A stretch of DNA of 61,942 bases from Hydrolagus affinis (lineage: Eukaryota). Location: contig JAAILG010001781.1 of NCBI GenBank assembly GCA_012026655.1, positions 1 through 61,942 on the forward strand. The letters are read 5' to 3'. Under the pieces are notes generated by a model that had not been told where the DNA came from, made no database searches, and worked only from the letters and a program-made list of their open reading frames with translations. Below are positions 6,960 through 59,836 of this stretch, in pieces; the stretch's first letter is position 1; each line of letters opens with the position of its first letter. A program made the translations under genes and the position numbers.

Positions 6960-7109
6960 TAGCTGCTACTCCTCCTCCTCAGTGGTTTCTCACATGGATC
7001 TCTCACACTCTGTATTCTTAACAGTACTTTTAGGTTTTCATGTTTTATTGGAGGAATCTAAATCCAGAACAGTATATGTCAGATTGTTCCCAGCTGTTCT
7101 TTGATTGGT
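6960..7109 (-). pseudogene. R1 decayed third tyrosine-motif exon (LTYTVL kept, then TGA, Y>C and a 1-nt deletion)
   Basis: Aligns to the R3 terminal exon 27022-27195. GGA>TGA at 7038-7040; TATGCAAAG became TGTGAGAG. Confidence 0.75.
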
Positions 7110-7558
7110 CTGAAAAGGCAATGTTTGACAATTTGATTATATTAATTCGGTTTCCTCAGAAATTCGTACAATGCATTTCAAAAACTCTCCTCAAATATTT
7201 GCCGATTATTATTTGAAGCATGACTTGCTCCATAGCTCATTTGATAAAGGCACTGCTCCTCACAGAACTGAGCTAAACGGAACCCATTAGGCACAATTCC
7301 ATTCTATATTGGATTAGTTACACATCAGCAGCTAAAATGGGCTGGAAAAGTAAAGCAAAAATCAACCAGGGTAGCAGATGTTCCAATGATTTGGAATGAT
7401 TTTTGTTTTGCTAATTGCCACAGTCATTTGGTCACCCAGGTCAGAGACAGAGAGAGGAAAGATCAGAGGAGAAAGAAAGATTAACAACAGAAATATACAA
7501 ACTAGTTGACAATAAACAATGAAGTGTGACACACTATATATAATGTAGCAAGTAATAT

Positions 7559-7681
7559 TCAGATGTATAACTGGGAGTATATAACCTGATTGTCTTCTTT
7601 TTTAGGTCTTGGAGTTGTTTTGCAATGATTCAAATCCATTTGGGCATAAGTCACCGACTCAGTCCCTGCTCCCTGTAGCGT
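7559..7681 (-). CDS. R1 second tyrosine-motif exon, probably terminal (VTYAQM; VIYSQL ITIM; TGA)
   Basis: ttttacag|ACG, open for 40 codons to TGA at 7559-7561. The paralogous donor CAG|GTA is CAGTTA here. Confidence 0.78.
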   Translation of the reverse strand, partial: TLQGAGTESVTYAQMDLNHCKTTPRPKKEDNQVIYSQLYI

Positions 7682-8232
7682 CTGTAAAATAGAATGCGAC
7701 TCAGTATTGCCATCACTAGTCTGCAGATTCCTGGATAGGTGTTGATCAAAATGCTCCCAAAAATAGATAGTTCCACCTAAGTTTCAGCATATGTTTAGCA
7801 TATAGATTCCAAATCTTTTAGCAGTGAAATTAAACGTGTGGCAATTATTAATTGATCTACAGAAATATGAAGTGTACATTTCCATATACGGTTGATATCA
7901 AAGTGCCTCATAGATTGACACAAATAATAAGTAGTCTTACATAAAAATACTATTTTGGCTTTATAGTGGCAGATTGTCATCAACATATCATAGCCCAGGA
8001 CAGTGCCAGAGAGTGAAGATTAGAGGACCAAGAAAGGTTAACCACAAAAATGTACAAATTGCCTTACAGAAAAAATTTAATTGAGTCCCAATGATCACTG
8101 AAGTGATACAATTCATTTGGATACAAATTCTGTTCTAAATTTGCGTTGAGTCCAGCACATTGGGATGTCCTCCCGATGTGAAAGGCGCTATATAAGTGCA
8201 AATTTGTTGTTGTTGTTGTTGCTCAAATATAC

Positions 8233-8343
8233 CTGGGCATAAACAGTCCCCTCCTCTTGCCTTTTCGGTTTCAAAGTTTTCTTGGAACTGGTTAAATTCA
8301 ATGTGACATAAGTCACCCCCTCATTCTTTGCTCCGTGCTTTCC
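8233..8343 (-). CDS. R1 first tyrosine-motif exon (VTYVTL ITIM; TVYAQ)
   Basis: ttttacag|GGA...CAG|GTATAT, 111 nt, phase 0-0, open frame GKHGAKNEGVTYVTLNLTSSKKTLKPKRQEEGTVYAQ. Confidence 0.8.
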
Positions 8344-8386
8344 CTGTAAAACAGAATGTGATCACAAGAAAAATATGTGGCATTCG

Positions 8387-8683
8387 TAAATAATAATCCT
8401 TGCATTTGAAATAGCGTTTCTCACATGTTCTAGACGTCTCAAAGCGCTTCACAGAATATACTGTAAAGTGAAGTTACATTTGTGGGTGAAACGTGGCAGC
8501 CAATTGTGCACAACAGTGTCACACAAACAGACGTGGATTGAAATTGTTATGAATGGGGAAGGATTTTTATGAAGCATGTGGAGTAAGGAAACTTTCCCAA
8601 GCTTTCAGCCTGATCTGCCTGGATTTGAACACAGGTCGCATGCTTGTAAGGTGAGGGTCTAACCACTGAGCTACAGGAGCTCC
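8387..8683 (-). mobile_element. tRNA-derived SINE
   Basis: Reverse-complement copy of the 729-1030 family. Confidence 0.85.
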
Positions 8684-9046
8684 AAATAAAGTGCCTTTCA
8701 AGCCTGAATCATGTTCTGAGGCACTGATAAATTGTTGTTTCTATAACTCTGTAAATTGTTGAGTAAGTATCAATTAGAAAGCCCTCGATAGTAAATACTT
8801 TCACTAAAGCCGATCATTTTTATATATAGCTTCCAAATATATTACAAGCAGTGTTACATTTCTATTGAATATTGTGTCATCAATTGCATGAAACTGTGCG
8901 GTTCATTATTCAACAATAATTCGAGGCCACACAGATAGACAGAGGGAAGATAATGTTGTTATTTCTTAATGATGAACCATATCTGTGCAACACAATAATT
9001 CTGTTTCCAGCTGAAATATCCACTGAAATCAATATAAGAAATGTAC

Positions 9047-10670: not shown

Positions 10671-10682
10671 AATATATCTTAC

Positions 10683-11678: not shown

Positions 11679-12427
11679 CTGTAGGGCAGAGAATGGAGCA
11701 GAATCGTGTCACTTGTGATCAGTTGGAATATAAACATTATTCTAATTTGAATTGTATAATAACTGTTTCCTTGGAAAATTATAACAACGAATCTGGTTTG
11801 TAATGGAAAGAATGTGATTTTTGCGGTTTTAAGAATGTTAAACCGAGTGTTGCAGTTTTAAGGCTGGCTTTGTTTGCAATGATGTGCGCAGTTTAGGAGA
11901 TTTAGTCGCCTGTTTGGTGGTGTGGGTGGGGGGGGGGGGGGGTAGAAGGTACACAATAGAGTACACAATCTTAACATTGAGGATTTCAGAAATGACGTGA
12001 AAACCTTCCCTTGACCTGGAATAATTCGGTTGTGAAATCAACACGAGGCCGGAGATGCAGAATTCAGTGAAAGATTTGAAAGGGAAACCGATCATAGCTG
12101 TAAAGAGTTTGGGGAGACGTGAAGAAATTGGAGTAAAAGCTCTGCCACCTTTCTGTAGCAGAAAAACCTTTAGTTTGGGACCATAAAGTTCCCGAATTCA
12201 TTCCCGAAATCCATCCTCCTCCCCCTTCCGTCTCTACAGTCAATCCCAGCTGAACACACACCTCTCTGAGTGTCTTTTCAGCCACTCTCCCATCCCAGCT
12301 GGATTATAGCTCCGGCTGCCATGCATTCTTTGCCAAGCGCTTCAAGCTGCTCTCCCAACAGTGACTTGTATTAATGTAAATTCAAGTAAATATACAGTGA
12401 AGATCTCAGCCAAATCATGTCACTTAC

Positions 12428-12733
12428 CACAAACAGTTAATTGCGACCCAGTTCCATTAACCGCTCTATTACCCGGAATGACCAGGCTACAGTAATAGAT
12501 CCCAGAGACCTGGATGTCTGCAGCCAGGAGATTGAAGAAGGCGTTTCTTGAACCATTGAAACCAAATTCTTTCGTTTGATCCTCTCTGAGGAATCCATTC
12601 TCTCCCAGCTTCCACCAGTGAGCTCTCACACTCCTGGTGACAGGGAAGCCACAGGAGAACGTCGCCTTCTCACCTCTGTTGACAATGATATGATCCGGTT
12701 GTTGTGTCACTGTGAACACTGTACAGTCAGCAA
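12428..12733 (-). CDS. R1 exon 2, V-set Ig domain with germline J-like G strand
   Basis: Acceptor ctgacag|TT, donor TGTG|GTAAGT, 306 nt, phase 1-1. Contains FSC...HWWK...SGIYYC and NGTGSQLTV. Confidence 0.93.
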
Positions 12734-12763
12734 CTGTCAGAAATAAATTCAAACATTGTTTTA

Positions 12764-12863
12764 NNNNNNNNNNNNNNNNNNNNNNNNNNNNNNNNNNNNN
12801 NNNNNNNNNNNNNNNNNNNNNNNNNNNNNNNNNNNNNNNNNNNNNNNNNNNNNNNNNNNNNNN
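12764..12863. other. 100-N assembly gap in R1 intron 1
   Basis: Run of 100 N. Confidence 0.99.
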
Positions 12864-12917
12864 AGAAATGATCCACACTGTGAGAGACAGACACTGAAAC
12901 ACAACACTCGCCAACAT
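12864..12917 (-). CDS. R1 exon 1, signal peptide (MLASVVFQCLSLTVWIIS...); last 4 nt and the donor lie in the N gap
   Basis: ATG at 12917; the visible 54 nt match the R4 leader exon (52041-52098), which ends AAAG|GTTTGT. Confidence 0.85.
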
Positions 12918-13008
12918 CCTGATCTGTGACTGAGACTAACCCTAAAGCTGTGGCTGGTCTGTGACCAGGGGTTGGAGTTGATTGAGATGAGATGTGAGAG
13001 TGATGTTT

Positions 13009-13017
13009 GACTTCCTG
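13009..13017 (-). promoter_or_regulatory. ETS-type motif CAGGAAGTC upstream of R1
   Basis: About 90 nt 5' of the ATG; the same motif sits upstream of each leader. Confidence 0.5.
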
Positions 13018-13249
13018 ACCCTGTGGGCGCAGCTCGCGCTCTGTTTTAAGAAAAATGTTTCCAGACTTTCACCTTATGTGAGATACACTATATCAGTGAG
13101 ACCCTATGAGAAGACAATTCGCCATTTGCTCACAAGACTGGAGAGCCAACCTTGTCTATTAGTTGTTGAGAACTCGTTTCTCTAGCACTTGGGATCATTA
13201 TCGTTGCTTTTCTCTCCTTCCTCCTGAACTGGCTTCAGGGAATCTCCTA

Positions 13250-13655
13250 AATTACTGTGACCAAAACTCTCCCCATCCCACTAGTCCTTGTCAGACTCCA
13301 CTGGCTCCCTGTCACAAAACGGATCGACTTCAAGATTCTTACACTCATCTGCAAAACACTGCCAGCCCTCCTCCTTCCTGATGTAGTCAACCGATCTTTC
13401 ATCCACTCCTCCCTGAAACTAAGCAAAGCTCTCACTCATTCCCTCCTCCCCGCCTCTCCTTCCCTCATTCATATGATGAAGGAAAATGTTCCTTTTGGTG
13501 GGTGCTTAGAGTCAAAGACCTTTCTCTTCGACCGCGCCTTTGGTCACCTTTCTACCCCTGCCCTGGCTCGGTCCCGGGATCCGCTGATGTGAAGCGCTCT
13601 GAGACGCCGCCCGGCGTGGAGGGCGCTGTATAAATCGAAGTTGTTGTTGTTGTTG
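13250..13655 (+). mobile_element. L2 3' fragment
   Basis: RLHWLPVTKRIDFKILTL followed by the tail. Confidence 0.75.
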
Positions 13656-15612
13656 TCGCCTCTCCCTCACCCCCGTCACAGGGCGACAGGCACAGCCACT
13701 GCTGAGCTCTCGGAGAGGCTAAACAGTGCGAATGATGCTGTAGATATATTGTTGGTTCATTCCATAACAGTTTGAGCAAATGCTTCATTTTAATCTTAAA
13801 ATTAATTGTAAAGAGCATCTTTAATTTAGGCGAATGGCCATTCATATAAATTTGTATAAAACATTTGTAACTAGAAGAGCAGCCATTAAATAGTTCTCGG
13901 GAAATTAAACTTGATTCAAAGGCGTGTAATGTAACATGTGCCCGTGTCCACCACATGGGGCTGGACCATCAATGATGACTAAGTTACCAGCTTGAACTTC
14001 ACTGAACACTTTATTTTCGACAATTCAATATACGAAATCAAAGCTGTTATGTTTAGTTATGGTGTGCGATACAAAGATCTTTATTCTATGTGAGTGACCA
14101 CAACAAATATCATGTGAAAATACATAATAAAAACCTTATTTTCCTTCACAGCCGACCGCAGTCGTCACCCACGCAAAACAACTGCGATTCAATTCAAACA
14201 CAATTGAAATGGAATTTGTCACACACACTGAGTGCGACAAAACAGACACATGATGCAGTTTTTAAAACGATGGAAACTGTGTGTGTTTTGGCTGACCCTG
14301 TGGCGTGATGGAAAATGAATACAGATCGAAGACTAGACGCCTTTCGGATGCTTTTGTGCAGAGGGTTCTGTGGATACTGATCCATAGATTTACTGAACAA
14401 TCCACATCATTGTCGGCAGCAGTCAGACATAGCAAAACATATTTAATGATCTATAATCGATGTACAACTGGACTCAGGTAATGTCCTGAAACTGTTTTAA
14501 ATGTTTGTACTGGTTCCGTTCGCTGCATTATATTATGTTAGTAATTGTCGGCTTATTGGAGCCAAATTGACCAAGATGATGTAAAGTAGTTTGACCTGAG
14601 TCGAGGGAGAATGTCTGTGAAACTGGCAATATTTACCGGGTAGTAAACAAATAAGCGGTGGGTGATATTCTAGATATATTCCGACTCCCAAACGGTATAA
14701 ATCAGATGCCCTCAACTATATATGATATAGTGTAACAGTCTAGAATTTCTTAATCCGCTGGTTCCCCCAGTCAGTGCATCATTCCGTCGCTTCTGATCGT
14801 TTCTTCCTCACTTCATCTATAATTAAATAAGAAATGCAATTGTGAACATTAACAATCCTTTGATTCTATGATTAATTGTAACCAATGCTGCCGTTCGTGC
14901 TAACAAATGATATTTCACTATGAAAACATCGAGACTGTCAGCGTAAAATCTTTCAGCTATAATTTTAAACGACAATCAACCATATTCGGACAACACAGTT
15001 TTCATCGATATCGTGTCTTTCGCATTGGAAGGACGTCTGAAAGCGCTTGACACTATCGGTTGGGCAGCCGAGCTGGAGATGGAAACCAAAGTCTCAAACA
15101 ACTCAAACACAGAGCTGGCCTTAACTCTCAGCAGGTCAGGCACAGCGATGGAGAAAGGAAAGTGGGGAATGTTTATGGTCCATGTCCCTTCCTCAGAACC
15201 CTTTGTTATGAATGGCCAGGGACCTGAAAAATGGACTCACTTTCCGAGAGTTTGAATTAAGCAAAATGTTATCTGATATATAGTTCTATGGAGTATTCAG
15301 CAAGCAAACTGTACGACTGTTTATGGGACTCTGTTGGGGGAAACTTGCTCCCGCGAATGGACCACAACATATACAGTCACTGCTTCAGACGACTCGGAGA
15401 CATGCGATAGCGCTTTATCAAATGCAAGGATTATTATCATTAAATCACCTGCGTTGGAATTAGAAACGGTATTTAAATAAATGCAAATAGTCTCCAGTAA
15501 TAAGGTGTTTAACAAACAACGAAAGGCAGTAAAACAAGTTGGCGTCCTGCCATTCAAGACGAGCGACAAAGATGTATCAATGCAAGGATTATTATTATTA
15601 TTATTAAATTAC

Positions 15613-26750: not shown

Positions 26751-27021
26751 AACAAGGCAATGTAATTACAATAGTTATATTTAAGAAAGTTAGCAGATGG
26801 GTACAAACATTTTTTCACAATTAAGTATGGTTATATAGGTACGGTGAGCAATAACTTCCAATAATTTTCCTGAACACATATTATTTAAAAATCTAATAAA
26901 TGCAGTTATGTTTGAAATGGGTGGAAAGAGCAATGCAGCACAAGACTAACATGGCACATCATTTGGTAAACTTAAAAACTACATCTAATATACACCACTA
27001 TCAATTTCTGTGCCTGTTACA

Positions 27022-27195
27022 TTATTTGGATCTTGGTTCCCTGGAGATAGCAGCTGCTCCTTCTCTATAATTTCTCACATGGATCTTTGCATACTCTGTA
27101 TTCTTAACAGTACTTTTAGGTTTTCCTGGTTTTTTGGAGGGATGTAAATCCAGAACAGTATACATCACATTGTTCCCAGCTGTTCTTTGATTGGT
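27022..27195 (-). CDS. R3 terminal exon with ITIM VMYTVL and ITSM-like TEYAKI
   Basis: ttttcag|ACC, 57 codons then a stop; lies inside ORF 27022..27207. Confidence 0.82.
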   Translation of the reverse strand, partial: TNQRTAGNNVMYTVLDLHPSKKPGKPKSTVKNTEYAKIHVRNYREGAAAISREPRSK

Positions 27196-27652: not shown

Positions 27653-27760
27653 CTGGGCATATACAACCGTCTCATCTTGTTTTTTAGGTGTTGGAGTTTT
27701 TTTGCGATTCAAATCCATTTTGGCGTAAGTCACCAACTCATTCCCTGCTCCCTGCAGTGT
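27653..27760 (-). CDS. R3 second tyrosine-motif exon (VTYAKM; VVYAQ)
   Basis: ttttacag|ACA...CAG|GTATGT, 108 nt, phase 0-0, open. Confidence 0.78.
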
Positions 27761-43610: not shown

Positions 43611-43930
43611 TGGAGCGCCAGTAGCTCAGCGGATAGAGCACTGGCTTTACAAGCATGAGACCTGTGTTCGAATCCAGGCAGGCCAGGGCGAAACCTTGGA
43701 CAAGTTTCCTTACTCCACATGCATAATAATAATTCCATCAACAAAAACAATAATAACAAATTGGTCATTTCAATCCACGACTGTTTGTGAGACACTGCTG
43801 TGCGCAATTGGCTGCTGCATTTCGCCCACAGATATACAGTCAATTCACTTTACAGTGTATTCTGTGAAGCATTTTGAGGCATTGAAAGATGTGAAAAAGT
43901 GCTGTATCAAATGCAAGGATGATTATTAAA
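43611..43930 (+). mobile_element. Best-preserved tRNA-SINE copy; others at about 17075, 32630, 35097, 42298, 42858, 45660, 47840 and 58745
   Basis: Box A TAGCTCAGCGG, box B GTTCGAATCC, common body and tail. Confidence 0.88.
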
Positions 43931-46900
43931 TTAAAAAATTAGAGTAATAATAACCATGATTTCTCTATTCATTCATTTATTCATTCAGAGACAGACGTAT
44001 TCAATTTATATTTAAATGTAAATTAATTTTAATGCATATCTCTCAAAAAGCAAACACAGAAATAGCTCCTCATATTTTACCTGATTTGCTTTTTGCCTGA
44101 GACCTATTGTGGCATATCTTGATGTTGATTTTGAAATCATATCTCAAAACTTTCCACCTTCTGATACTCGTAAATAGAATCGATTTCGAAACATAGTTGT
44201 ATATAGGACAGTGCGGTGGGCAGTAGAACTATAGCGAATGTTGTGCAATCCGATATAGTGAGTAATATTTCTCACACACCTGAATGTGTTTGTTTTTGTT
44301 GTAAGGCTCAGATCAGCTCAGTCTTTATATGCTAGAAAATAATCTGAAATAAAAACAGAGACAGTTACACTTTTATTTTGCACAAACATCTACTAAATGC
44401 GATCAAATGTGAAGTATTCATGGAAGTTAGATCTGTTTTCCGAGATGTATTGAATTATTTTCAGTGCAATTGTGGAAACAATGAAAACCCACTATTACAA
44501 AGTAAATTATATACAGTACATTCAAACATTATTCATATATATAGATATATAGATATATAAACATATGTCGATATACTAATCTAATATATGTGTGTATATA
44601 TAATAGAAAACATCAAAAGGGGAAGATTTTCAGTGATGTATATCAAACAAATATTATAGGCTTATTGCCTTTTTCACTTTCCAGTGAAGCGGGAGATTGC
44701 TGCACTGAGAAATTCTCAAAAACTGTGGAGGATCGACAGCATCACATCAGTGAACATCTACCCATGAAAAAAATAACATGGAATATAGACACAGTTAATA
44801 ATTTAAACTAATTTTTCTGCGCTGTTTCCCCATAAAATACACTGTCAATTCACTTTAGTGAATCATTGGAGCTCGTTGAGACGACCCAACACGGCACTAA
44901 TATCACATCAAAAGATCATTGTTATCTCAAAACAATTATGAATTGAATGGATGATCATGCCTAAATAACAAATCCATACATGATTCATACTTTGTTCTCA
45001 AATCAATCGTTTGGAGAAATTATCATTATTTAATACAATCATTCTTAATCATTATTTACTTAACTATTTATTGAAGGCTTCATTTGGAAGGACTGACCCA
45101 TATAAATCATCCCCAGGATGAATGGCCATCGCTCCTCAAAACATGTTAGACCAACAAATTTGAACGGATTTCTTCACCAGGTCAGGGCAAAGGGCCTCCA
45201 AGATAATTTTGGACATTTTTTTTGCAAATTTTGCACTTAATCTGAAACCTCCACACCACCCCACCCCCACCGCCCCCCTCCACACACACCCCCAACACAC
45301 ACATAAAACGGATGTCACACTTTCCACCTGCAGTTTCAAAACAAATCGAGGTTTTCTGCCCATCGAACTAAGGCCCTGAATCTCTGAGATCGAGTTAAAG
45401 GACAACAGCTATGGGTTGTTTATTGAAATGTTCTGTTGATCGAGATAGATGCAAATGTGTCCATTCGCTTCTGTGTCAATTAGCCCGCAGCTTTTAATGT
45501 CATTAAATATATGAATGACACATATATATATAGTTTAACAAATTTATTTGATGTTCAGCGCTCTTTCGCATTTCAGCACATTTTGTCGTGGTCATTAAAA
45601 TCTGTCGTTTGGGTTTATTCACATTGTTTGGAGACCATTGTTTTATTCATTCTTTATGAGTGGAGTCCTGTGGCTCAGTGGTTGGAGCTCTCGCCTCTCA
45701 AGCGATAGACCTGGGTTTCATTCCAGACAAGGGTGAAACTCTGAGCAAATTTCCTTACTCCACATGTCTGCTAATATTCCCTCGAAAAAAGCAATAATAT
45801 ATTGGTCAATTGACTGCCGCGTGTCGCCCACAAATATGCAGTTAATTCACTTTACAGTGTATTCTGTGAATCATTTTGAGTCGTCTAAAAGACATGAAAA
45901 GCATCATATCAAATGCAACGATTAATATTATAATAATAGTATCATTGAAATTGAAGAAACCAGGTCACATTCACGCTTAAATGCCTTTTCTCTACAAGTA
46001 GTGTTTTAACGATGGGATGAAGTGAATATGGGTTAATTTTGATACAATACATTTGACAAGAGAACGGCTATTCAAGTCATCTGGTGAATCTTACCGTTGA
46101 GCTAAATGAAGTGCTGCGGTTATAACTTTAATGTCCACTTTGTGAAATGTCAAAATGGTTTCTCGTCCTTTCTCAAAAACTGAAGCCAGATGATGGCCAT
46201 ACAGAGGTTCTTTTGTAAAATATTAATAATATTAATTCTAGGACAGACAATGATACAGAACACGTTATTGTGATCAGTTGGAAGATTGAACTTTATTTCC
46301 ATTTGAATTGTATATGAATTCTTTCCTTGCAACGTTAAAATAAACAAGGTCCCCAGAGATGCGGCCCCACTATGTTGCAAGTGTCATAACAAGCACTCTG
46401 GAGGGAACTGATGCTGTTCGGGTTTTTTTATTTGGAACAATGTTTAGGTTGCCAAGTGTTAAAAGATGCTTCAAGGAGGTCCTGCCACTGTTCACCAGAC
46501 CAACAGCTCGATGAAAGGATTTAACCATAACGAGAAGATGCCTAAATGCGGTTCATATTGATAGACCTCAGAATGATGGGACGTCATTTGTCAATGAATT
46601 GTAACATATTGCAATGATACATCCTTACAATAAGAGGTAAAGAAATAGAAGGAGACACAATTCTGTTATTTAGCAAAATGTGTTCGACCTGATATGAAAG
46701 CTACCGGTAAATGTTTTTAGAGGTTAGAAAGTGGTAGAGAAATTGTGTTGAAACCAATGCCAGCAATATCGAGCAACAACAGCTGAAGATTTCATAATCT
46801 ATAGATACATAAGTACCGGTATACCTTCCCGTTCACATCAAATTCATTTTTTTCTCCTGTGTTTCTTTAAAAGTTATAATTTTTGAACTACTGTAATTTA

Positions 46901-49708
46901 CCATATTTAGAATAGGTCATTCAAAATAATTTCACGACTGTCGATGGGATATGTTTCTCTGCTAATTCGTGTGTTTCTAAACAACTGCTACTCATATAAA
47001 TCAGAGATTCTGGATATTCTTTTCAATAGAAGTATTCTTATTAGCATTATTGTTAGTATTATAAGTATCATTGTTGTTTGTATAATAACAGAAATAAGAA
47101 TAATAAGCATTGTAATCGATAATGGAGCCAATTGTATCGAGATAATATCAAATAGTTTCACAGGATTCAATGTAAAAACTCACGATTTTGTAGGAGAATA
47201 AAGCAGCCAAATTTGCGCACAGCAATGTCCCATATACAGCCATGAACTGAATATCACTGAATAACAGTGATATCTGGGGATTTGAAAGTCGACAAATCAG
47301 TGGAACTTAGTTGTTGTTTGTTGTTGTTGGCCAGCACTCTGGAGGAAGAATCCCTGTTCTGTTTTTTTAGTTCCACATGATTTGAAACATGTATCTGAGC
47401 AGGCAGAAGGGACCTCGGTTCAGCGTCTCATCCAAATAGGGGGAACCTCAAGACACAGAGCGCTAGCCCGCCGTTGCATTGGATTGTCAATGCAAACTGT
47501 GATCTTCGTGTTTTGACGTACAATATCCACAACGTACAACGTACGTACAACATCCACAACAATGCGTTCAGGTCAGAATATAATACCAGATAAGCAATTC
47601 AAATTCCCACTTTGCTGTGTGGTATACATTCACCGCCTCCCATAAACACAACAGCAAATTCGCACATAAATATTCATTTATGTGAATATTCTATTGATGA
47701 AAGTATTTCAGGTTAAAACAAAATATTTTCCTGTGTACTCTGCTATCCTAACATTGTATGAGAATGGATAATTAAACAAACAACTTACGCATAACGATTT
47801 CAAAATCCTGGAATGCACGCCTTGTAACATTCTCTGCTACTACTGCATTCAAGCGAGAGACCTGGGTTCGATTCCAGATAGGGCGAAACCTTAGGAAAGT
47901 TTCCTTACTCCACACGCCTAATATGAATCCTTCAAAAAGCAAATTAGAGTAAATTGGCCATTTTAATCCACGACTGTTTGTGGGACACTGCTGTGCAGAA
48001 TTGGCTGTCGCTTTTCGCCCGCAAAACTGTTCATTCAATTCACTTTACAGGATACTCAGTGAAATGTTTTGAAACATCTAGAAGATGTGAAAAGTGCTAT
48101 TAAACTACTATATTGAAGTTCATTGAACAATTTATTTCTTGCAATTGAAAATGATGAAATCAATGCTGTTATATGCAATTACAATGCAGGATACAGAGAA
48201 CTTTGTTAGAGATTTTAGGCGAGTGCTCCTACAGATATCACACACAAATGCAATAAAACGCTTATTCTTTGCAAAGGCATAACCGTCATCCTTACAAAAA
48301 ACAATATCTACATTTTAGTATAATAAAACACGCAATGTAGGAGACCTTGTGATCAAGTCTCGGTAGTTCACACAGTGTAAAATAGCCTGAAACTTGGGGT
48401 AGAATGACAAACTTGACTTCGTTTTCTGGTGGCAAATTTGAAACTTTTGTTTTATTATTATTTAATAAAATATTTTAAAAATTATTTAATAAACACTTTA
48501 CAGATTACGTTTGGTCTACTATGTTATATTCATAATTGTCGGTTTATTGGAGCCAAACTGCTCCAGGATGATGTACAATATTTTGAGTCTCGAAGGGGAA
48601 GTGTGGGAATGTTCTAATATTTACCGAGTATCAACAAGAGTTGATACTGTAGATATATTCCGACTCCTAAACGGTATAAATCGAATGAACTCAAATGTGT
48701 CTGTTATAATATATCAGTCCACAATGTGTAATCTTTAGTTTCTTCCAGTCGGTGCATTTCCACCAGCATAATTCAGTCGCTTTTCGTCGTTCCTTCCTTC
48801 TTTCATCTATAATTAAACAAGCAATGCAATTGTGAACATTATCGATCTTCGATTATGTGGTTCATTGCGATGGGTGCTGCTACTCACTCTAACAAATTGA
48901 TAGTTGTAACTGAAATGTTTACAACGAGACTGCAAATGTCAAATGTTTTAGCTATACTGTAGTTTGAAATGGCAATTCAACATATTCGGACAGTACAATT
49001 TATATTTATATCGCGCCTTTCACGTTGGAATGAGGTCTGAAAGCGCTTGACGCTATCGGTTGGGCACCCGAGCTGGAGGCGGAAACCTAAGTGCGGTGTA
49101 AGACTCAAACACAGGGCTGGCTGGGAGCTCTCGGCAGGTCAGGCACAGCGATGGAGAAAGGAAAGTGGAGAACGTTCATGGTCCATGACACCTCATCAGA
49201 ACACTTCGTGATGAAGGGCCTTGGACCTGAAAAATTGACCCACTTTCGTTTGTTCAGATGCTGCCTTAACTGCTGTAAGCCAGTTTTTGTTTCAGATTTC
49301 CACTATCTGGAGTATTTTGCGTTTTATCACAGATCAAATCTGGTTCCATTTGTCCGTAAGACAACACAAATTTATAACAACTTTTTATATTTCCAAGTTA
49401 TCTTCAATATTGGTCGGCCTCGTGTAAGCACAGCATGTGAATGCCGAAATAAATATTATTATATGATAGGATAACCAATTAACAGATATGGAACTGATCG
49501 CACGCATATATTTTTCAATATTGTTCCAGGCACCTGGAGATTTGGAGGAGATATCTTCATATCCACAGATTACAAGAGAATCATCCAGTACAACATCTCG
49601 TTTCCAAAATCTAAACTATTCTTCCGGTTACCGGTGAAAACTCATGGGCTACGATACAAATAATTGTGAATGAAACCACAATATTATTTTGAAACACAGA
49701 ATGCCTCC

Positions 49709-49827
49709 TTACCTTTCAAGTTGTGAGATTTTAACATGGTCAACAATGAAGATGGTCAACACTATCACTACCAAGAAACAGAATATAAACCGTAAAATCG
49801 TCTCGTTCTCCGACATTCCACAACAAC
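49709..49827 (-). CDS. R4 exon 4, TM exon with Arg and a short tail (GCCGMSENETILRFIFCFLVVIVLTIFIVDHVKISQLER*)
   Basis: Acceptor ttttctag|GT is in phase with the C1 donor. The hydrophobic stretch is preceded by Arg. AG|GTAAG reads either as a donor or as AGG TAA. Too short for the ORF track. Confidence 0.75.
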
Positions 49828-50991: not shown

Positions 50992-51576
50992 CTGTAGGGC
51001 AGAGAATGGAGCAGAATCGTGTCACTTGTGATCAGTTGGAATGTAAACATTATTCTAATTTGAATTGTATAATAACTATTTCCTTGGAGGGTTTAGAAAG
51101 TTAAGGTACATAATTTTAACATTGCGATTTTCAGAAATGACGCGGAAATCTTCCCATCACATGGAATAATTTTGTTGTGAAATCCAGTCCACAGTGGCTT
51201 CAGATGCAGAATTAAGTGGAATATTTAACAGGGAGGCAGACCATAGCTGTAAAGAGTTTGGGGAGAGGTGAAGACATTGGAGTGAAAGCTCTGCCACCTT
51301 TCTGTAACAGAAAAACCTTGAGTTTGGGAGCATAAAGTTCCCGAATTCATTCCCGAAATCCATCCTCCTCCCCCTTCCGTCTCTACAGTCAATCCCAGCT
51401 GAACACACACCTCTCTGAGTGTCTTTTCAGCCACTCTCCCATCCCAGCTGGATTATAGCTCCGGCTGCCATGCATTCTTTGCCAAGCGCTTCAAGCTGCT
51501 CTCCCAACAGTGACTTGTATTAATGTAAATTCAAGTAAATATACAGTGAAGATCTCAGCCAAATCATGTCACTTAC

Positions 51577-51882
51577 CACAAACAGTTAATTGCGACCCAG
51601 TTCCATTAACCGCTCTATTACCCGGAATGACCAGGCTACAGTAATAGATCCCAGAGACCTGGATGTCTGCAGCCAGGAGATTGAAGAAGGCGCTTCTTGA
51701 ACCATTGACACCAAATTGTTTCGTTTGATCCTCTCTGAGGAATCCATTCTCTCCCAGCTTCCACCAGTGAACTCTCACACTCCTGGTGACAGGGAAGCCA
51801 CAGGAGAACGTCGCCTTCTCACCTCTGTTGACAATGATATGATCCGGTTGCTGTGTCACTGTGAACACTGTACAGTCAGCAG
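51577..51882 (-). CDS. R4 exon 2, VJ-type V domain
   Basis: ctgacag|CT...TGTG|GTAAGT, 306 nt; 6 nt differences from the R1 V exon. Confidence 0.93.
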
Positions 51883-52040
51883 CTGTCAGAAATAAATTCA
51901 AACGTTGTTTTAAAACAAAATACAACGAAATACACACAGAGCAAGTTAGAGATGCTCTTGGCATATTCATGGATATAAATAAAATGGGAACTTCATCCTT
52001 ATTCTGTTTCCGAAAACTGATATATTGAATAATCACAAAC

Positions 52041-52098
52041 CTTTAGAAATGATCCACACTGTGAGAGACAGACACTGAAACACAACACTCGCCAACAT
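52041..52098 (-). CDS. R4 exon 1, signal peptide (MLASVVFQCLSLTVWIISK)
   Basis: ATG at 52098, donor AAAG|GTTTGT, 58 nt, phase 1. Confidence 0.85.
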
Positions 52099-54679
52099 CC
52101 TGATCTGTGACTGAGACTAACCCTAAAGCTGTGGCTGGTCTGTGACCAGGGGTTGGAGTTGATTGAGATGAGATGTGAGAGTGATGTTTGAATTCCTGAC
52201 CCTGTGGGCGCAGTTGGGGCTATATTTTTAAAAAGCGTTTCGAGACTTTCGCCTTATGTGAGATACACTATATCAGTGAGACCCTATGAGAAGACAATTT
52301 GCCATTTGCTCACATGGCTGGAGAGCCAACCTTGTCTATTAGTTGTTGAGAGCTCGTTTCTCTAACACTTGGGATCATTATCGTTGCTTTTCTCTCCTTC
52401 CTCCTGAACTGGCTTCAGGGAATCTCCTAAATTACTGTGACCAAAACTCTCCCCATCCCACTAGTCCTTGTCAGACTCCACTGGTTCCCTGTCACAAATT
52501 ACACTCGTCTACAAAACACTGCCTGCCCTCCTTTCCAATGGCGTCAGCACAGTTTTCATGAACTCCACCCTGACACTGTGGAAGGCTGTCCCTCGTTCCC
52601 CCCACATTACCCCCCACTCCTTCCTCATTTTCATGTGATGTTGGAAAATCTTCAATTTTGAGCGTACTTTCCATCACCTCTCCCCCACCCCCGTCACAGG
52701 GCGACAGGCACCGCTACTGTTAGGCTCTCAGAGAGTCTCAACCGTGTGAAGGACGCTGTATACATGTTGTTGTTTCATTCTATAATGGTATGAGCGAATG
52801 CTTCATTTTAGTCTTCAATTTAACTGTAAAAAAAAATCTTCCATGTCGACAAATGTCAATGAAACCAACCATTTGTAACTAGAAGAGAAGCCATTAAATA
52901 GTTCTCAAGAAAATCAGGCTGACATTGACATAGTTCAGCTTGATGGTGAAGCTCCCAGCTCAAGGCGTTTAATGCAACATGTGCCCGAGTCCATTACATT
53001 TGACTAATTCCAGAACAGAAGGTTCCGTGGATTCCATGGATTTGATTTCCAATTGATGTAAATATCTGTGCACGAGATATTGTTTTGAATGACAATGTTG
53101 AATCAGCTTGAAAGTACATTCGATAACTTATCAGCAATGCGTTTTAAGTCGCTTCCATTTCGCAAAGACACTCGGTCAAAAGGACCAGTACTTAGTGTCA
53201 GCTTGTCTCAGCATTCTGCCCGCCAAGTCACAAGGTTATGGGTTCAATCTTGACCAGAGTAGTTTAGGAAATTCCAGTAGTTACGGTGCTATCCTTAGAG
53301 TGAAACCCGTGATCAGGTTTGCCTTTAGGGTAAAATCTCCTACATGGATATTGGAAAACAGAAATAATTATCTCCCAGTTTCCATGCCAAACATTCCGGA
53401 TAAATGATATCGATCATTTATTTCATGACTGATTGTTGGATATTGTTGTGAAAAATTGACTGCAGAGTTCTCCTACCGTAAAGTATCATTACATTAAATA
53501 ATGAGAAATGCCTTTGCCCGGTTTCAAAGCTTGATAAGAAGTTTCTCAAATGGGGGAGATTATGATTATTACTATTCACGGTCTTCACCAACCGGTGAAG
53601 CCTTGTATTAATGCTGCACTGAAATATATTTGCAGATGACATGATACCCTGATATTTTCTGTAGTTTGTCTCACTCTACAGTTCATTTATTAAAGCGAAG
53701 AAAACATATATCCGAGTGGATCTCTCATACACATACATAAGGTGACGCCGAAAAGCTTCCGATGAGAAAAGGCTGAAGACCTAACTAACCATAAACGCAA
53801 CCATTTCAGCATCACTATTCAGCTTGAGTGGTTTTTGTAATCGGAAATGCTGTTTTGAGAATCAAGGTATAGAAAGATAGAAGTAAAGAAATAATGAAAC
53901 AAAGTAATACAGAAACACAGAAACCAGACCCAGCTATTCAGTTCCTTGAGCCTGTTCTGCCATTTTATAAGATCATGGTTGATCAGTACCTCAAGTCCAG
54001 TTACTCTCACACCCCCACCACTTCTCACCCATTGCCCCATATCCCTTAATACCCTGACCTAATAAACGTCTATCTTCCTCTATTTTGAAAATGTGAATGG
54101 ATCCAGGATCCACAGCCTATTGGGGGGAGAGTCCCAGACTTCCAGTAGCTTTTGGGTGAAAAACTGCTTCCTAAATTCACTAGTAAATGGCCTAGCTTGA
54201 ACACAAAAATAAGCAACAACAAAATAGCAACAAAATTACGTTTCTGTAGCACCTTTCACATCGGGAGAATGAAGCCATCCTGTTCTGGATTATCCTTCTG
54301 CAGGAAATAGTTTCACTGTATCTACCCTCTCATAAAATCATACAAATATATAGCACCGAGGCAGGATAATTCAGCCCATTGGGTCTGTGCTCACTCTTCG
54401 AAAATAACTTTGCAAATCAATCACACATCCTCACTCCCTTCCCACAGGCCTACAAATGTGTCCCCACAAATAGTTATCTACTTCTTTCTTAAAAGTTGTT
54501 ATCAGGCTTGATTCTGCCAACACCATCCTTGTCAGCCTCCCAAACTCCTCCTCACATAGGCTGCAGAACACCCAGTTCTCTTCCCTTATTGTCATTCCAA
54601 CCCCACTCCCACTCCACCCCCCCCCCTCACACACCCCTGCCCCCCGACCCCCACCAACTCCACCAAAACAACAACAACA

Positions 54680-55920
54680 ACAACTTTGATTTATATAGCT
54701 CCCTCCACACTGGACGGCATCTCAGAGCGCTTCACAATAGCAGATCCCAGGACTGAGCCAGGGGCAGGGGTAGAAAGGTAACCAAAGGCACAGTCGAAGA
54801 GAAAGGTCTTCAGCTGGGAACTGAAACTGAGAAAGGAGTGGGCAAGACGAAGGTAGTGAGGAAGGGAATTCCAGAGTCTCGGGGCATAGTGGCTGAAGGC
54901 CCAGCCGCCAAGGGTGGAGCAGAGGATTCAAGGGACATGGAGGAGGCCAGACCCAGTGGAGCGAAGGCAATGGGAGCTGGTTTGAAAAGAGAAGAGGTCA
55001 GAGAGGTAGGGGGGTGCAGAGGAGTGGAGGGATTTAAAACAAGGGTGAGGATCTTGAAGTCGATCCTCTTGGGGACAGGGAGCCAATGAAGTCTGGTAAG
55101 GACTGGGGTAATGGAGGAGTGAAGTTTGGTGCGGGTGAGTATGTGGGCGGCAGAGTTTTGGATGAGTTGTATTTTATGGATTGTGGTGGTGGGGAGACCG
55201 GCGAGGAGGGCATTTGAATAGTCCAGCCTTGAGGTGACGTAGGCATGGACCAAGGTTTCAGCGGCTTTTGGGGTGAGATATTGCCGGAGACAAGCAATCC
55301 ATCGGAGGGTGGAAGAAGGCGGTGCTGTGAGGGACCGAATGTGGGGGAGGAAGGACAGTTGGGGGTCGAACCTGATGCCAAGGTTGCGCACAGGTTCAGA
55401 GAGTTTCAGGGGGAGACCAGGAAGGTCTAAACTCCAACACAATTCCGCAATCCTATCAACCCCACTCTTGCCCGATTCCACTGGCTTCCCATCACCCAGA
55501 GGAATCAATTCAACATCCTAGTGCTCAAATTCAAAATCCTCCATGGTCTCACCCCACGCTTCATCTGCAACCTCCTAACCCCCTGCCAACCTCCCCACTC
55601 CTCTGCTCAGCAGGCTCTGGCTTGCTCCATAACTCCATAAATCCCAACCCACTTGCCCCACCATTGGCGGTTGAGCCTTCAGTCACTCTGTCCTACTCTC
55701 TGGAATTCCATCCCGCTCTCCCTACACCTCATCTTCTCTCTAGCCTCCTTCAAGTCCTCCATCAAGACCCTGCACTTCGAGAATGCCATCAGTCAACCCA
55801 AATCCGTCCCTTTCCCTCCAACCTCCACTTCACCGACCCCCAGCTCGGGTTTGAACCAATTTGACTGTCCAGCACCTTGGGATGACATGAAAGGCTCTTT
55901 TCAAGTGCAATTTTGCTGTG
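54680..55920. mobile_element. Two L2 fragments pointing away from each other (minus about 54680-55440, plus about 55440-55920)
   Basis: ORF 54810..55508 contains AETLVHAYVTSRLDYSNALL and HWLPVPKRIDFKIL. Confidence 0.85.
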
Positions 55921-57070
55921 GTTATCCATTATTTATTTTATAAATATATAGGGGTTCGAATTTCATGTGTAGTGAGCCAGGACAAAGAAGATGTGCAGAA
56001 AGGTAACCTCTATGTTGTTACATAAACGATGCAATATGGTGCACCAATATGGTGTCTGTAGTCATTAACAACTCTTTGAGAAGCAATTAATAGAAAAGCC
56101 GCTAATGTATAGAAAATGTTGAAATCAATTGTGCTCTGTGTTTAATCTGAGTGAATGAATCACTGACACTGGAATTATTTACCTGTATTGACATTTTCAG
56201 ATATAGCAGAATGAATAGAAATTTAGCATTTAGTTGTTTCATGTTTGTTTGTTTTTTTAGTGGTTCAATAGCATTTGAACTGTTCAACGCCCATGCCATG
56301 ACTTTTTCACTGTGTTGTATGAATTTCGCCATACTTCATTGATTCTCTTTTAAGATAGCGCATACCAACTTTTTTTTAAAGAATGCTGAAAACACAGAGT
56401 GATTAGGCAAGACATATTCATGCAATCTATGTTTATATTTTATTGAAAGGTTGTTGGAATATGTTGCACAAAACAGAACTTCCTAACTTTTATATTCATG
56501 TTTTGGTATAATAGTAGTTAAACACCCAATTTGAAGGGAAGTATTTATCATTCAATAACAACAAAATAGGATATACATCAAAAGATGTACATTTCATGCC
56601 TCAGTTCTGATTGAGCAGAGGTCTCAGAATGTAATATTGTTAAGGACAATTTAATAGAGTAAGAGACGAAGGAGTAAATTCATAGAATGACATATAAAGT
56701 TACTGGAATCTTATGGCACAAAAGGAGGCCATTCGGCTATTTGAGTCTGCCAGCACTTTAAAATGTGCAATTCAATCCCGCTCCCCAGCTCTCTCTCCAT
56801 AACCGCGAACACCCATCCTCTCCATATTAATGTCTACCTCTCTTGTAAACTTCAACGTCATTGTATTAATATTTCAATGCAATATTCTGCTTAATACAAC
56901 TTTAATTTTCTGCATCAATAAATGTATATATATATTTTGGGTTACAATTTAGGTAATACCAATTGTGTTTCGGAAATTACCAGCGGATAAACGAATTCAA
57001 ATACAATTTCCAATAACGAGATGTTTAAAAAACAACGAAAGACAAAAAGATAAGTAGGCATCATGCCATC

Positions 57071-57278
57071 TAAAATACTACAGATGTTAGAAATCTGAAA
57101 ACAAAAACAGAAATCGCTGGGAACACTCAGCGGGTCAGCCAGCATCTATAGAGAAAGGAAAAGCGATTCAACGTTTCAGATCTGAGTTCTGACAAAGGGT
57201 CCTGAACGAGAAACGGTGACTCACATTTCCTTCCTGCAACAATGCTGCCTGACCTGCTGAGTGTTCCCAGCGATTTAT
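57071..57278. mobile_element. Palindromic MITE-like repeat; partial copies at about 1260, 15100, 20990, 34705, 40066 and 49100
   Basis: 35-nt inverted arms (57111-57145 and 57242-57276, 2 mismatches); flanking 11-nt direct repeat. Confidence 0.75.
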
Positions 57279-57606
57279 ATCCTACCATCCAATCCTGTGT
57301 TGGGTTCAGAAACGGTGTAATTGTCAACCTCTGGATTCGTAAGGCTGACATGAGATGCCAGACAGGTATAAACAACCCCGATCTCTGGAGGCTGAGTCTC
57401 TTCCATAGAGCTGGAAACGTTGTGAAGCCCATTTGAATGATTGTTTTTCCGGAAATTAATCCCAGTTTTAATTTCATTCCCATCTTTAAACCACGTGAGC
57501 GTTAAATCCCCCGGGAAAAACGCAGCAGTTTCACACACAAGAGTCAGAGAATTTGATGAATCTCTTTCAGGATCTCTGGGGAATATCTTCAGCGGAGTCG
57601 GGGGCA
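57275..57606 (-). CDS. R5 exon 3, C1-set domain, probably terminal (...NTGLDGRI*)
   Basis: cctccag|TG, 321 nt to the GTAGGA donor at 57285. Read-through stops at TAA 57275-57277. No TM exon was found downstream. Confidence 0.85.
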
Positions 57607-59282
57607 CTGGAGGACAGAGAAAGGAGCAGAATCGTGTTACTTCTAATCAGTTGAAATATAAAACGTTATTCTAATTTGAATTGTATAATAATTATTTGCT
57701 TGGAACATTATAATCTGGTCTGTAATGCCACGAATGTGAACCCTTCTTATCACATGAATATTGTGAAGGTGTGAAATCTAGTCGCACGAGTGGCCATAGA
57801 TTCAGAATTAAGTGGAATATTTTAAAGGAAGACAGTACAGTTGTAAAGAATGTGGAGATCGGTGAAGAAATTTGAGTAAACGTTCTGCCACCATTCCAGA
57901 GCGACAACAACCCACATTTATATAGCGCCTTCAGGTAGGATAGTAACGTTAGATGCAGATTTGAATAGAGATTTTGCCATCAATAGAGAAATAAGTAAAA
58001 TATCCCAACATTCTCACCAACATTAATATACCTCTACTGTATTTCTATAACATTTCAACTAATTTACAAGAGGTACAGCAGGTTTCTTCGAAACCGTTTT
58101 CTGGCTGTTTGTGGGATATTGTTGTGGGTGGGTGAACTGTTCCGGTTTTGTAAAATGTTAACTTCTGCCTTGAATATTAATAATAATAATAATCCTTGCA
58201 TTTGATATAGCATTCTACATGTTCATAACATATCTAAAATCGCTGCACATGATACACTGTGAACTGGATTGATTGTGCACTTGTGTGCAAGATACGAGCA
58301 ATCTTGCACACAATCTTGCTCTGAGGAGCAATCTTCATCACAATAACAATGCTTATCTTCGAGCTCTTCACAGTGAGAGAACCGCCTCAAAGCATTTAAT
58401 TGGATTCACTGTAAAGTACGGTGAGTTTGTATTTCTGTATGAGATCAGAACACAGCAGCCAGTTCTCCACACAGCAATGTACCACCAACAGTCATGAAGT
58501 GAATGAGAACATTTCTCTGGGAAACTCATTAGCCAGAACACACCGAGGAAGAATCTCTCTTCCCTTGTTGAATAGTACAGCGGGATCTTTAATATTCACC
58601 TGAACAAGCAAAGGGGACCCGAGTTTAACGTCTCCCCCAGTGTGGAAGCCACAGAGCGCTCCTCAGCATCGCAGTGAATTGGGACCAACCAGGGACAATC
58701 TGAATAAATGCCATCAGGATTGAATACATATCAGCTAGAGCAGTGATGATAATAATAATAATAATCCTTGCATTTGGTATAGCGCATTTCTCGTCTTCTA
58801 GACGTTTCAAAGCGCTTCACCGAATATACTGTAAACTGAATTTACTGTATATATGTGGGTGAAACGCAGCAGTGAATTGCACACAGCAGCGTCTAACAAC
58901 CAGCTGTGGATTGAAATGACCAATTTATTATTGTTTTTATTATTATTAGGTGCGCGGAGAAAGGAAACTTGTCTATTGATTCGTCCTGCCAAGAATTGAA
59001 CCCAGGATTCTCGTGTGTAGCATGAGTGCTCTAGCCACTGAGCTCCTGGACTCCAGACTAAAGTTCTCGTCACAGTGGTATGGAGCGACATACACGTTTG
59101 AAAGCCTTGCATAGCGCAATTATGGAGCAAATCAACTTCCCACTTTGTTGTGTGTCATAAATTTGCCGGCTCAAATCGTTACAATAAGAAAGGGCAAAAC
59201 TTAATCATTTACCTTATCGATTCCAAAATACAGCAATGCATCACCTATGAACATTCTATGGAACTAATGTATTCACACTTAC

Positions 59283-59588
59283 CTTGTACAATTAAACGTG
59301 AACCAGATCCATTTACTGCTACTTTCCCGTGATGGATCACTGCACAGACATAGACCCCTGAGTCTTGGAAAGTCACATTTAGCAGCTGGAATGTGCTGGT
59401 AGGAAATGTTTTCTTGTTATCAGGTTTTGTGGGCAAGTATTCACTCTCTCCTTGTTTCCACCAGTGAAATGATATATCTGAAATTGCTTGATTATTGTAA
59501 ATCTTGCAGCAGAATTTAACGTTTCCACCTTGTAATACTGTCTGTTTTGGAGGATATTGAATCACATTCACCGATGTATCAGCAGCAA
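59283..59588 (-). CDS. R5 exon 2, VJ-type V domain
   Basis: cttaacag|TT...CAAG|GTAAGT, 306 nt. Contains FCC...HWWK...DSGVYVC and NGSGSRLIV. Confidence 0.92.
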
Positions 59589-59781
59589 CTGTTAAGAAAT
59601 GAATTAACCTATAATTAGTGATTATCGAGAGGACGAAGCGCAATAAACTAAATAGAGAGAGGGAGAGAAAAGTGGGAGGAAGTTAGAGGGAAAGAACGAC
59701 GGACGAATTCACTGTACACATCTTGAAGCTCCTTATCTATATTGTTTTGTATAGAAACTGTGCTGTAGTAAAATGACAGAC

Positions 59782-59836
59782 CTGAGGCTACAATCCCAAA
59801 CAGAGAAAGATAGAGGATCACATCACTGGCCATCAT
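59782..59836 (-). CDS. R5 exon 1, signal peptide (MMASDVILYLSLFGIVAS)
   Basis: ATG at 59836, donor TCAG|GTCTGT, 55 nt, phase 1. Confidence 0.75.

Follow-up and report, generated by a model that had tools for sequence, protein, structure and literature searches.

A probable tandem cluster of SIRP-like V(J)-C1 receptor genes, with inhibitory, activating and truncated copies, in the cartilaginous fish Hydrolagus affinis

The stretch of Hydrolagus affinis DNA analysed here (contig JAAILG010001781.1 of assembly GCA_012026655.1), which we call the window, is 61,942 bases long, contains a single run of N (12764-12863) and holds a cluster of immunoglobulin (Ig)-type genes that resemble in their architecture the SIRP family of paired receptors. 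Every exon of Ig type is on the minus strand. Scanning the window by tblastn with the peptides of all exons, and comparing it against itself, yielded four sets of leader, V(J) and C1 exons (R5, R4, R3 and R1) and two C1-only remnants (R2ψ and R0ψ); read from 5' to 3' on the minus strand, the order is R5, R4, R3, R2ψ, R1, R0ψ. An earlier note, made from the sequence of the window without database searches, had described four intact leader-V-C1 cassettes in one orientation; the four sets and their common orientation stand, the two remnants were absent from its list, and the word intact cannot be certified for R1, which has a gap at its 5' end.

The leader, V, C1 and transmembrane (TM) exons are in phase 1 with consensus AG and GT sites. 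R5 begins with a leader exon at 59836-59782, which has an ATG, a hydrophobic leader and a phase-1 GT donor, and continues with a V(J) exon at 59588-59283 (306 nt, phase 1 at both ends, C-terminal NGSGSRLIV) and a C1 exon at 57606-57286, which shows the C1-set hallmarks and is the last exon found for this gene. The corresponding leader, V(J) and C1 exons lie at 52098-52041, 51882-51577 and 50991-50671 in R4, and at 33689-33644, 33450-33145 and 31324-31004 in R3. In R1, the first 54 nt of the leader exon (12917-12864) are present and are identical to the first 54 of R4, the N run follows, and the V(J) and C1 exons are found at 12733-12428 and 11678-11358. The eight V and C1 exons of these four genes are all open, keep their cysteines and tryptophan, and have consensus splice sites. 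Each copy has one C1 exon, which the exon scan of the window places between V and TM, and the C1 exons of the window show the C1-set signature LVC...FFPGDI.L.W ... YTCLASHV and have 73-93% identity among themselves.

Each V exon measures 306 nt and encodes its own J-like G strand, either NGTGSQLTV or NG(A/S)GSxLIV (NGAGSELIV, for example), with the exon ends following NG(T/A/S)GSxLxV in all four copies. Because this strand is contiguous with V in one exon, we conclude that V and J are joined in the germline. Rearranging Ig and T-cell receptor (TCR) genes have V and J segments that lie apart and carry recombination signal sequences; no such arrangement was found in the window, where V and the J-like strand are contiguous in four of four V exons. 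The view that a cartilaginous fish has here V(J)-C1 receptor genes of the non-rearranging kind is upheld.

The V domains fall into two lineages, A (R1 and R4) and B (R3 and R5), as had been proposed from the letters of the sequence. Within lineage A the V exons share 98.3% of their nucleotides and 96% of their amino acids, within lineage B 81% and 63%, and between the two lineages amino acid identity is 31%. Beyond the V exon, R1 and R4 remain alike (11961-13904 against 51106-52912) over the intron between C1 and V, over intron 1 and the leader, and over some 1 kb of 5' flank. In the self-comparison of the window the 3' halves of R1 and R4 are unrelated, and the 3' half of R1 is homologous instead to that of R3 (about 77%, 6723-8000 against 26811-28063). 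The shared 5' tract of R1 and R4 looks like the product of a recent duplication or of gene conversion, and V domains that are 96% identical on a gene of the inhibitory type (R1) and on one with an arginine in its TM (R4) are the hallmark of a paired receptor. The lineage-A V domains (51577-51882, 12428-12733) also have two extra cysteines, at the third and the last residue of the exon, and the R4 stalk (49709-49827) has a Cys-Cys pair that is missing from the Callorhinchus milii protein P0191; these cysteines could form disulfides within or between chains.

The N run (12764-12863) starts directly after nucleotide 54 of the R1 leader exon and ends 30 nt before the acceptor of the R1 V exon. The end of the leader exon falls inside it, as do the donor and most of intron 1. 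The sequence on each side follows that of R4 in order and orientation, with 11961-12763 matching 51106-51912 at 94.5% and 12864-13507 matching 52045-52669 at 87%, and this fits continuity across the gap. The R4 counterpart of the gap is 132 nt long (52044-51913) and takes in the final 4 nt of the leader exon together with the GT donor and intron 1. Since the gap is mostly intron, a reading frame across it is meaningless, and a 165-residue open reading frame (ORF) spanning it was rejected as an artefact of translating N as X. Because the last leader codon and the donor lie unread within the gap, R1 cannot be certified as intact at its 5' end.

R4 and R1, so similar in their V domains, end in different 3' modules. 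The last exon of R4 (49827-49709, stop included; acceptor tttctag, phase 1) encodes the Cys-Cys stalk, a TM with an Arg near the outer face, about four residues into the TM, an Asp-His at the inner end and a nine-residue tail that closes with TAA; the Arg-TM and short tail attributed to this gene in the earlier note are confirmed by this exon. R4 is open from ATG to stop with good splice sites. Its residues 1-267 align with residues 1-265 of C. milii P0191, both proteins ending at the same residue, and the pattern R...(I/V)(D/E)H is also found in proteins of catshark, sevengill, bamboo shark and white shark. We considered a single gene with alternative Arg-TM and inhibitory modules and rejected it, the Arg-TM exon being present in none of R1, R3 and the C. 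milii P0178 gene.

R1 and R3 carry a longer set of 3' exons, comprising a TM exon and four cytoplasmic exons (cy0 to cy3), the tyrosine motifs of which include ITIMs (immunoreceptor tyrosine-based inhibitory motifs). For R1, these lie at 10796-10683 (TM, uncharged), 9090-9047 (cy0), 8343-8233 (cy1), 7681-7571 (cy2; 7559-7681 with read-through) and 7109-6932 (remnant of cy3), and in R3 at 30522-30421 (TM), 28737-28694 (cy0), 28299-28190 (cy1), 27760-27653 (cy2) and 27195-27020 (cy3, with the stop). The 44-nt cy0, which enters in phase 1 and leaves in phase 0, was found by comparison with C. milii proteins and with the P0178 gene, and it has good splice sites in both R1 and R3 (an AG acceptor and a GT donor in R3). 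Direct splicing of TM to cy1 was rejected, cy0 being present in R1, in R3 and in the P0178 gene.

The inclusion of cy0 decides the frame of the tail, so that the ITIMs of R1 are in frame and those of R3 are out of frame. The R1 cy1 exon, at 111 nt, has the same length and frame as its C. milii counterpart, and with cy0 included the R1 tail reads VTYVTL and TVYAQ in cy1 and VTYAQM and VIYSQL in cy2, two of which (VTYVTL and VIYSQL) are canonical ITIMs. Because the cy2 donor has mutated from GT to TT, the R1 translation ends three codons past cy2, and the unused cy3 has a premature TGA, a Tyr-to-Cys change (TEY to TEC) and a 1-nt deletion.

In R3, cy1 measures 110 nt, one nucleotide having been deleted relative to R1 and C. 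milii, and with cy0 included 14 codons are followed by a stop, with no ITIM. If cy0 is skipped, a full protein of 388 residues results, with VAYVTL in cy1, VTYAKM and VVYAQ in cy2, and VMYTVL and TEYAKI in cy3, its C-terminal end being matched by C. milii P0155 and P0178. No alternative AG or GT site that would rescue the frame was found nearby, and only the skipping of cy0 restores it. The lesion in cy1 may be recent, may be compensated by exon skipping or may come from an error of assembly. The R3 TM, otherwise of the uncharged, inhibitory type, has a Glu at its centre (…CVVEGLIL…) where R1 and C. milii have Gly, and R3 has one Tyr replaced by Phe. Compared in the ITIM frame, the tail exons of R1 and R3 give a ratio of nonsynonymous to synonymous substitution rates (dN/dS) of 0.44, that is, the tails have been under purifying selection, and from this we conclude that both were constrained for most of their history. 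The claim that ITIM tails are attached to R1 and R3 can be retained insofar as both genes have the exons, with the amendment that the reading frame of R1 holds up to cy2 and no further, and that R3 is frameshifted when cy0 is included.

R5 presents a different picture. A scan with exon peptides found no TM or cytoplasmic exon for it between 57286 and 52100. Its intron after C1 keeps its homology to that of R3 until a repeat starts at about 56518, some 85 nt before the place expected for the TM exon. Because the homology to R3 breaks at this repeat insertion, R5 is better described as truncated than as clearly soluble by design. Read-through of the C1 donor would add GRI before a stop, and polyadenylation hexamers lie downstream of C1, ATTAAA at 56906 and 56655 and AATAAA at 56444. 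The soluble version suggested for this gene in the earlier note is right in that R5 is without a TM; solubility itself is a deduction from that, and the copy is a truncated one. Among the C. milii models, soluble isoforms do arise by read-through after C1 from full genes of the family. One repeat block (about 54500-56520) occupies the place where the R5 TM and tail exons would be expected.

The two remnants, R2ψ (15907-15611) and R0ψ (2263-1946, outside the span 6960-59836 considered earlier), are about 92% identical and have in common a short out-of-frame internal segment; R2ψ has in addition lost seven codons. The window scan found no leader, V or TM exons for either. The read-through C-terminus of the remnants resembles that of the C. 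milii isoforms P0152 and P0160, and the stretches downstream of them (1022-1455 and 14508-15310) share homology with sequence 3' of R4 (48499-49247), which suggests that the remnants derive from R4-like genes formerly placed after R1 and R3.

To place these genes, we searched a profile made from the four C1 exons against 1.84 billion representative proteins and obtained 616 matches at E<=1e-3, 13 of them at E<=1e-30, with a best E of 6e-88. All 20 of the 20 clusters that were checked by name are chondrichthyan, the genera including Callorhinchus, Amblyraja, Scyliorhinus, Heptranchias, Heterodontus, Chiloscyllium, Carcharodon, Mobula, Mustelus and Hemiscyllium. A full-length profile of 11 members recovered 61 further chondrichthyan proteins, after which came Ig heavy chains, these being the best matches without a species name, and then MCAM. 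R1, R3, R4 and R5 have their best matches in C. milii, to proteins of which they are 49-64% identical over their full length (E 1e-70 to 1e-131), with residues 1-388 of R3 aligning to residues 1-370 of a C. milii protein at 54%; no protein in the database is more than 70% identical to any C1 exon of the window. Relatives include C. milii XP_042196405.1, XP_007902824.2 and A0A4W3H622, S. canicula XP_038662024.1 and A. radiata XP_032892405.1. The exon chain of leader, V(J), C1, TM, 44-nt cy0 and 111-nt cy1, phases included, matches that of the C. milii P0178 gene, and both the ITIM tails and the Arg-TM exons occur in relatives from chimaera, shark and ray. Together with the V domain shared by R1 and R4, this bears out the inhibitory/activating logic that had been assigned to the cluster and shows it throughout the family.

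The relatives carry the Pfam C1-set domain PF07654 and have been named by annotation pipelines in many ways: as SIRPα-like ('tyrosine-protein phosphatase non-receptor type substrate 1-like', PTPNS1-like), SIRPβ1-like, tapasin-related-like or TAPBPR-like, NCR3LG1-like (NCR3 ligand 1-like), Igλ-like, TCRβ-like, class II-like of the major histocompatibility complex (MHC), PD-L1-like, or simply 'uncharacterized'. The expectation that such genes would be annotated only generically is thus borne out, and because at least eight different 'X-like' labels are in use, the family is hidden from comparative surveys. No paper characterising this chondrichthyan family was found in a literature search, out of the reach of which lay the subscription literature. 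The novelty claimed for the cluster holds to that extent and has to be qualified in that the genes fall in a large family already annotated automatically; judged by their sequences, they belong to an auto-annotated and apparently undescribed chondrichthyan family of SIRP-like proteins.

In a tree of V domains, lineage B falls in a clade with C. milii V domains that has 100% support, and we conclude from this that lineage B predates the split from C. milii. Lineage A is placed separately, with C. milii XP_007902894 as its nearest and weakly supported relative, and an origin before the same split is suggested for this lineage too, though not well supported. Several times in the tree, an activating and an inhibitory member prove to be close relatives in their V domains. 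In C. milii, P0178, with ITIMs, and P0191, with the Arg-TM, have identical V domains and C1 domains that differ by about 7%, which appears to be an independent case of the V homogenisation between paired genes that we see in R1 and R4. The C. milii family spans at least 15.35-15.66 Mb of scaffold MU249845.1. Two C. milii loci taken with 10-kb flanks, like the window itself, contain members of the family only. Two models of the family have an unusual domain order, the skate model P0008 (Amblyraja radiata XP_032892405.1) with two almost identical C1 domains in tandem and the C. milii model P0001 (XP_007902905.1) with C1-V-C1; each could be a recent exon duplication or a fused or chimeric gene model.

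From the exons and the family to which they belong, we consider that the window is probably a tandem cluster of a chondrichthyan, SIRP-like family of paired receptors with inhibitory, activating and truncated copies. Each full protein would consist of a signal peptide, a germline-joined V(J) domain, one C1-set domain, a stalk and one of two 3' modules. The inhibitory module would be made of an uncharged TM and four small cytoplasmic exons with repeated tyrosine pairs of the form (I/V/L)xYxxL ... TxYAx, and its motifs predict that the phosphorylated ITIMs of R1, where this gene is expressed, would serve as docking sites for SHP-1 and SHP-2. The activating module would consist of one exon, encoding a TM that has Arg in its outer part, a conserved inner Asp-His and a tail of about nine residues, and R4 may activate by pairing with an adaptor that has an acidic TM residue and an immunoreceptor tyrosine-based activation motif. 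Because R1 and R4 have nearly the same V domain, they would be expected to bind the same ligand through it and to signal in opposite directions. Their V exon, leader and 5' flank appear to have been homogenised recently by duplication or gene conversion. R3 would be an inhibitory-type gene of the second, older V lineage, possibly on its way out, and R5 would be at most a secreted V-C1 protein, which, with read-through isoforms of other genes, may act as a decoy; R0ψ and R2ψ are presumably dead C1 remnants. The earlier idea of a symmetrical paired system with two specificities has to be given up, as lineage B is without an activating member in the window, R3 is frameshifted and R5 is truncated.

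Several observations weigh against this interpretation. The splice junctions throughout are predictions from sequence, and no polyadenylation hexamer was found within 1 kb after the R4 stop. The end of the R1 leader and its donor are unread owing to the gap, and the R1 tail is shortened and its last exon decayed. Because of its frameshift, the Glu in its TM and the replacement of a tyrosine by Phe, R3, the inhibitory gene of lineage B, may be dying. In the ectodomains, dN/dS is near or above 1, which fits either diversifying selection or relaxed constraint. The term 'SIRP-like' rests on architecture, tail pattern, pipeline names and one profile ranking, and SIRP is absent from the top 60 of every single-domain search of the PDB. 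The damage to the genes invites a harsher reading, in which the cluster is mostly a gene graveyard, with recent duplicates decaying by birth and death and few or no working receptors among them. To the lost cy2 donor and decayed last exon of R1, the lesions of R3 and the ectodomain dN/dS of about 1 it can add the two C1-only remnants, the loss of all 3' exons from R5 and the dense retroelement fragments between the genes. It has to reckon, however, with R4, which runs unbroken from ATG to stop and is matched over its whole length by a C. milii protein, with the two canonical ITIMs that R1 keeps in frame, with a dN/dS of 0.44 in the tails, and with eight open V and C1 exons out of eight, their conserved Cys and Trp in place; we regard it as quite improbable for the cluster as a whole. 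A paired-receptor cluster in which some copies are decaying remains our preferred reading. If transcripts and signalling were confirmed, R1 and R4 would form a clean inhibitory/activating pair in a chimaera-like fish, with the same V and opposite modules, and SIRP-style paired receptors on a V(J)-C1 core would predate the split of sharks, rays and chimaeras.

The remainder of the window is rich in repeats. At least ten copies of a repeat of about 300 bp are present in both orientations, with 67-81% identity, at 726-1017, 8389-8684, 32685-32922, 35102-35385, 42299-42612, 42858-43159, 43618-43928, 45661-45937, 47850-48101 and 58750-59055. ARAGORN finds tRNA-like heads in two of them (32842-32913 and 45664-45735), and the repeat looks like a tRNA-derived short interspersed element. 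A set of mutually similar ORFs with the motif LSFLPHIRS...LQxIQNSAAR..., also in both orientations, lies at 274-726, 5383-6240, 24807-25630 and 54790-55510; these are taken to be fragments of retroelements resembling long interspersed elements. A C/T-rich tandem repeat with a period of 27 or 53 occupies 61833-61942 and reaches the end of the window.

How this family relates to known receptors was approached through structures and profiles. In single-domain searches of the PDB, the lineage-A V domain is nearest to TCRβ, TCRα and Robo, with E-values of 1e-4 to 1e-6 to TCR and Ig V domains, the lineage-B V domain to Robo, CEACAM, NKp30 and TCRα, and the C1 domain to the Igλ constant domain, UrIg2, the β2 domain of the MHC II β chain and TAPBPR. 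We did not use these searches for placement, as they return generic matches of the Ig superfamily and do not discriminate between families. When the full-length profile of the family was run against 177,635 distinct PDB sequences, SIRPα (2wng) ranked 6th and SIRPγ 19th, V and C1 forming one continuous stretch of alignment. The ranks above SIRPα are taken only by Ig chains with several C1 domains and by UrIg2, the latter the second-best match. An AlphaFold2 model of a C. milii member (mean predicted local distance difference test score, pLDDT, 84) has the V and C1 tandem of an Ig light chain, and the top 50 Foldseek matches to it are all Fab light chains, which confirms the V+C1 fold and gives no information on the family. 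A word-indexed homologue search with the R4 V ORF, limited by its length window and by the requirement for shared 5-mers, returned no match.

The NITRs, which are known from bony fish only, have either a V domain alone or a V domain followed by a second Ig domain, and this second domain is of the I type and not, as in the window genes, of the C1-set. No NITR is among the matches that were checked by name. In other respects the likeness is close, since NITRs, according to one account (PMC2442602), are likewise clustered, fast-diversifying and non-rearranging V(J) receptors, most of them with ITIMs and a minority activating with a charged TM.

Reviews on the non-rearranging VJ genes of sharks discuss UrIg and UrIg2, NKp30 and PRARP (PMC12227049, PMC10751288). 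UrIg2, a non-rearranging antibody gene linked to an Ig/TCR complex, encodes a V-C1-C2-C3 homodimer with C2-C3 like the Fc of IgG (PMC12227049). The window genes share with UrIg and UrIg2 the germline-joined V followed by C1-set sequence in a cartilaginous fish; they differ from UrIg2 in having one C1, membrane anchoring (R1, R3 and R4), signalling modules and a large multigene family. One could see in them, in the way proposed for UrIg/UrIg2 and PRARP, still-living relatives of a precursor of Ig and TCR that had a non-rearranging VJ-C1 structure; they would then act as dimeric molecules resembling antigen receptors, and not as checkpoints of the SIRP type. A V(J) in one exon followed by a C1-set exon, a predicted fold that matches Ig light chains, the rank of UrIg2 in the profile search, the TCR β and α matches of the lineage-A V domain, and cysteines in that domain and in the R4 stalk that could support disulfide-linked dimers all agree with such a view. 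Yet the J-like strand reads N-G-x-G, without the Phe or Trp of FGXG, the matches to V domains of TCR and Ig have weak E-values, the ITIM tails and Arg-TM modules are of the innate paired-receptor type, no evidence of linkage to MHC or antigen-receptor genes appeared in the window or at the two C. milii loci, and, whereas the UrIg genes are single-copy (PMC12227049), this family has many members and evolves fast. We therefore hold this precursor view to be very improbable, and the link to antigen-receptor precursors drawn in the earlier note keeps its basis in the V(J)-C1 architecture and amounts to a likeness of architecture only. Since this core is the architecture discussed for such precursors, the family could serve as an outgroup for phylogenies of V and C1 domains.

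In its design the family resembles the SIRPs of tetrapods. These too are paired inhibitory and activating receptors with near-identical V domains, with an N-terminal V that includes a J-like G strand in one exon and is followed by C1-set sequence, with a multi-tyrosine ITIM tail, and with an activating partner that has a basic TM residue and a very short tail. The SIRPα tail has paired motifs, xTYxxL...TEYAxx, about 24 residues apart, and its F-G strand reads FRKG...GAGxELxV, both resembling the family, which we offer as a lead only. There are differences as well: the window genes have one C1 where tetrapod SIRPs have two membrane-proximal ones, R4 has its Arg near the outer face and an inner Asp-His where activating SIRPs such as SIRPβ have a mid-TM Lys that pairs with DAP12, and the tail of the family is built from three repeated tyrosine-pair exons.

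If the window genes were true orthologues of SIRPα and SIRPβ, they would represent the CD47-binding 'don't-eat-me' checkpoint and its activating partner in the ancestor of jawed vertebrates. The NCBI and UniProt pipelines name many of the relatives SIRPα-like or SIRPβ1-like, and SIRPα is the best PDB match to the family profile that is neither an Ig nor UrIg. Against these points stand the differences in C1 number and in the position and kind of the basic TM residue, the inconsistency of the pipeline names across the relatives, the absence of SIRP from the top 60 in the single-domain searches, and a word-indexed profile search that returned no tetrapod SIRP, its index needing shared 5-mers. 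The window and the two C. milii loci, holding only members of the family, offer no comparison of synteny, and in a survey of 2026 the SIRPs are dated to Tetrapoda (PMC13262535). Orthology in this strict sense is in our view unlikely, and membership of the family in the SIRPs is, on the present sequences, not established.

A looser relationship, in which the SIRPs have this family as their sister group or as their surviving ancestral form, and in which the family has repeatedly re-created its pairs by conversion of V exons between activating and inhibitory genes, is one that we put forward tentatively. Should repeated conversion be the rule, R1/R4 and C. milii P0178/P0191 would be two independent cases in different V lineages and might reflect an arms race with ligands or with pathogen decoys in the oldest living jawed vertebrates. 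The cluster is of interest for comparative immunology and is not a new kind of system; what it may change is the age of a known one, as a sister or ancestral position would take the SIRP-type checkpoint back to the ancestor of jawed vertebrates, in contrast to the tetrapod dating of the 2026 survey (PMC13262535).

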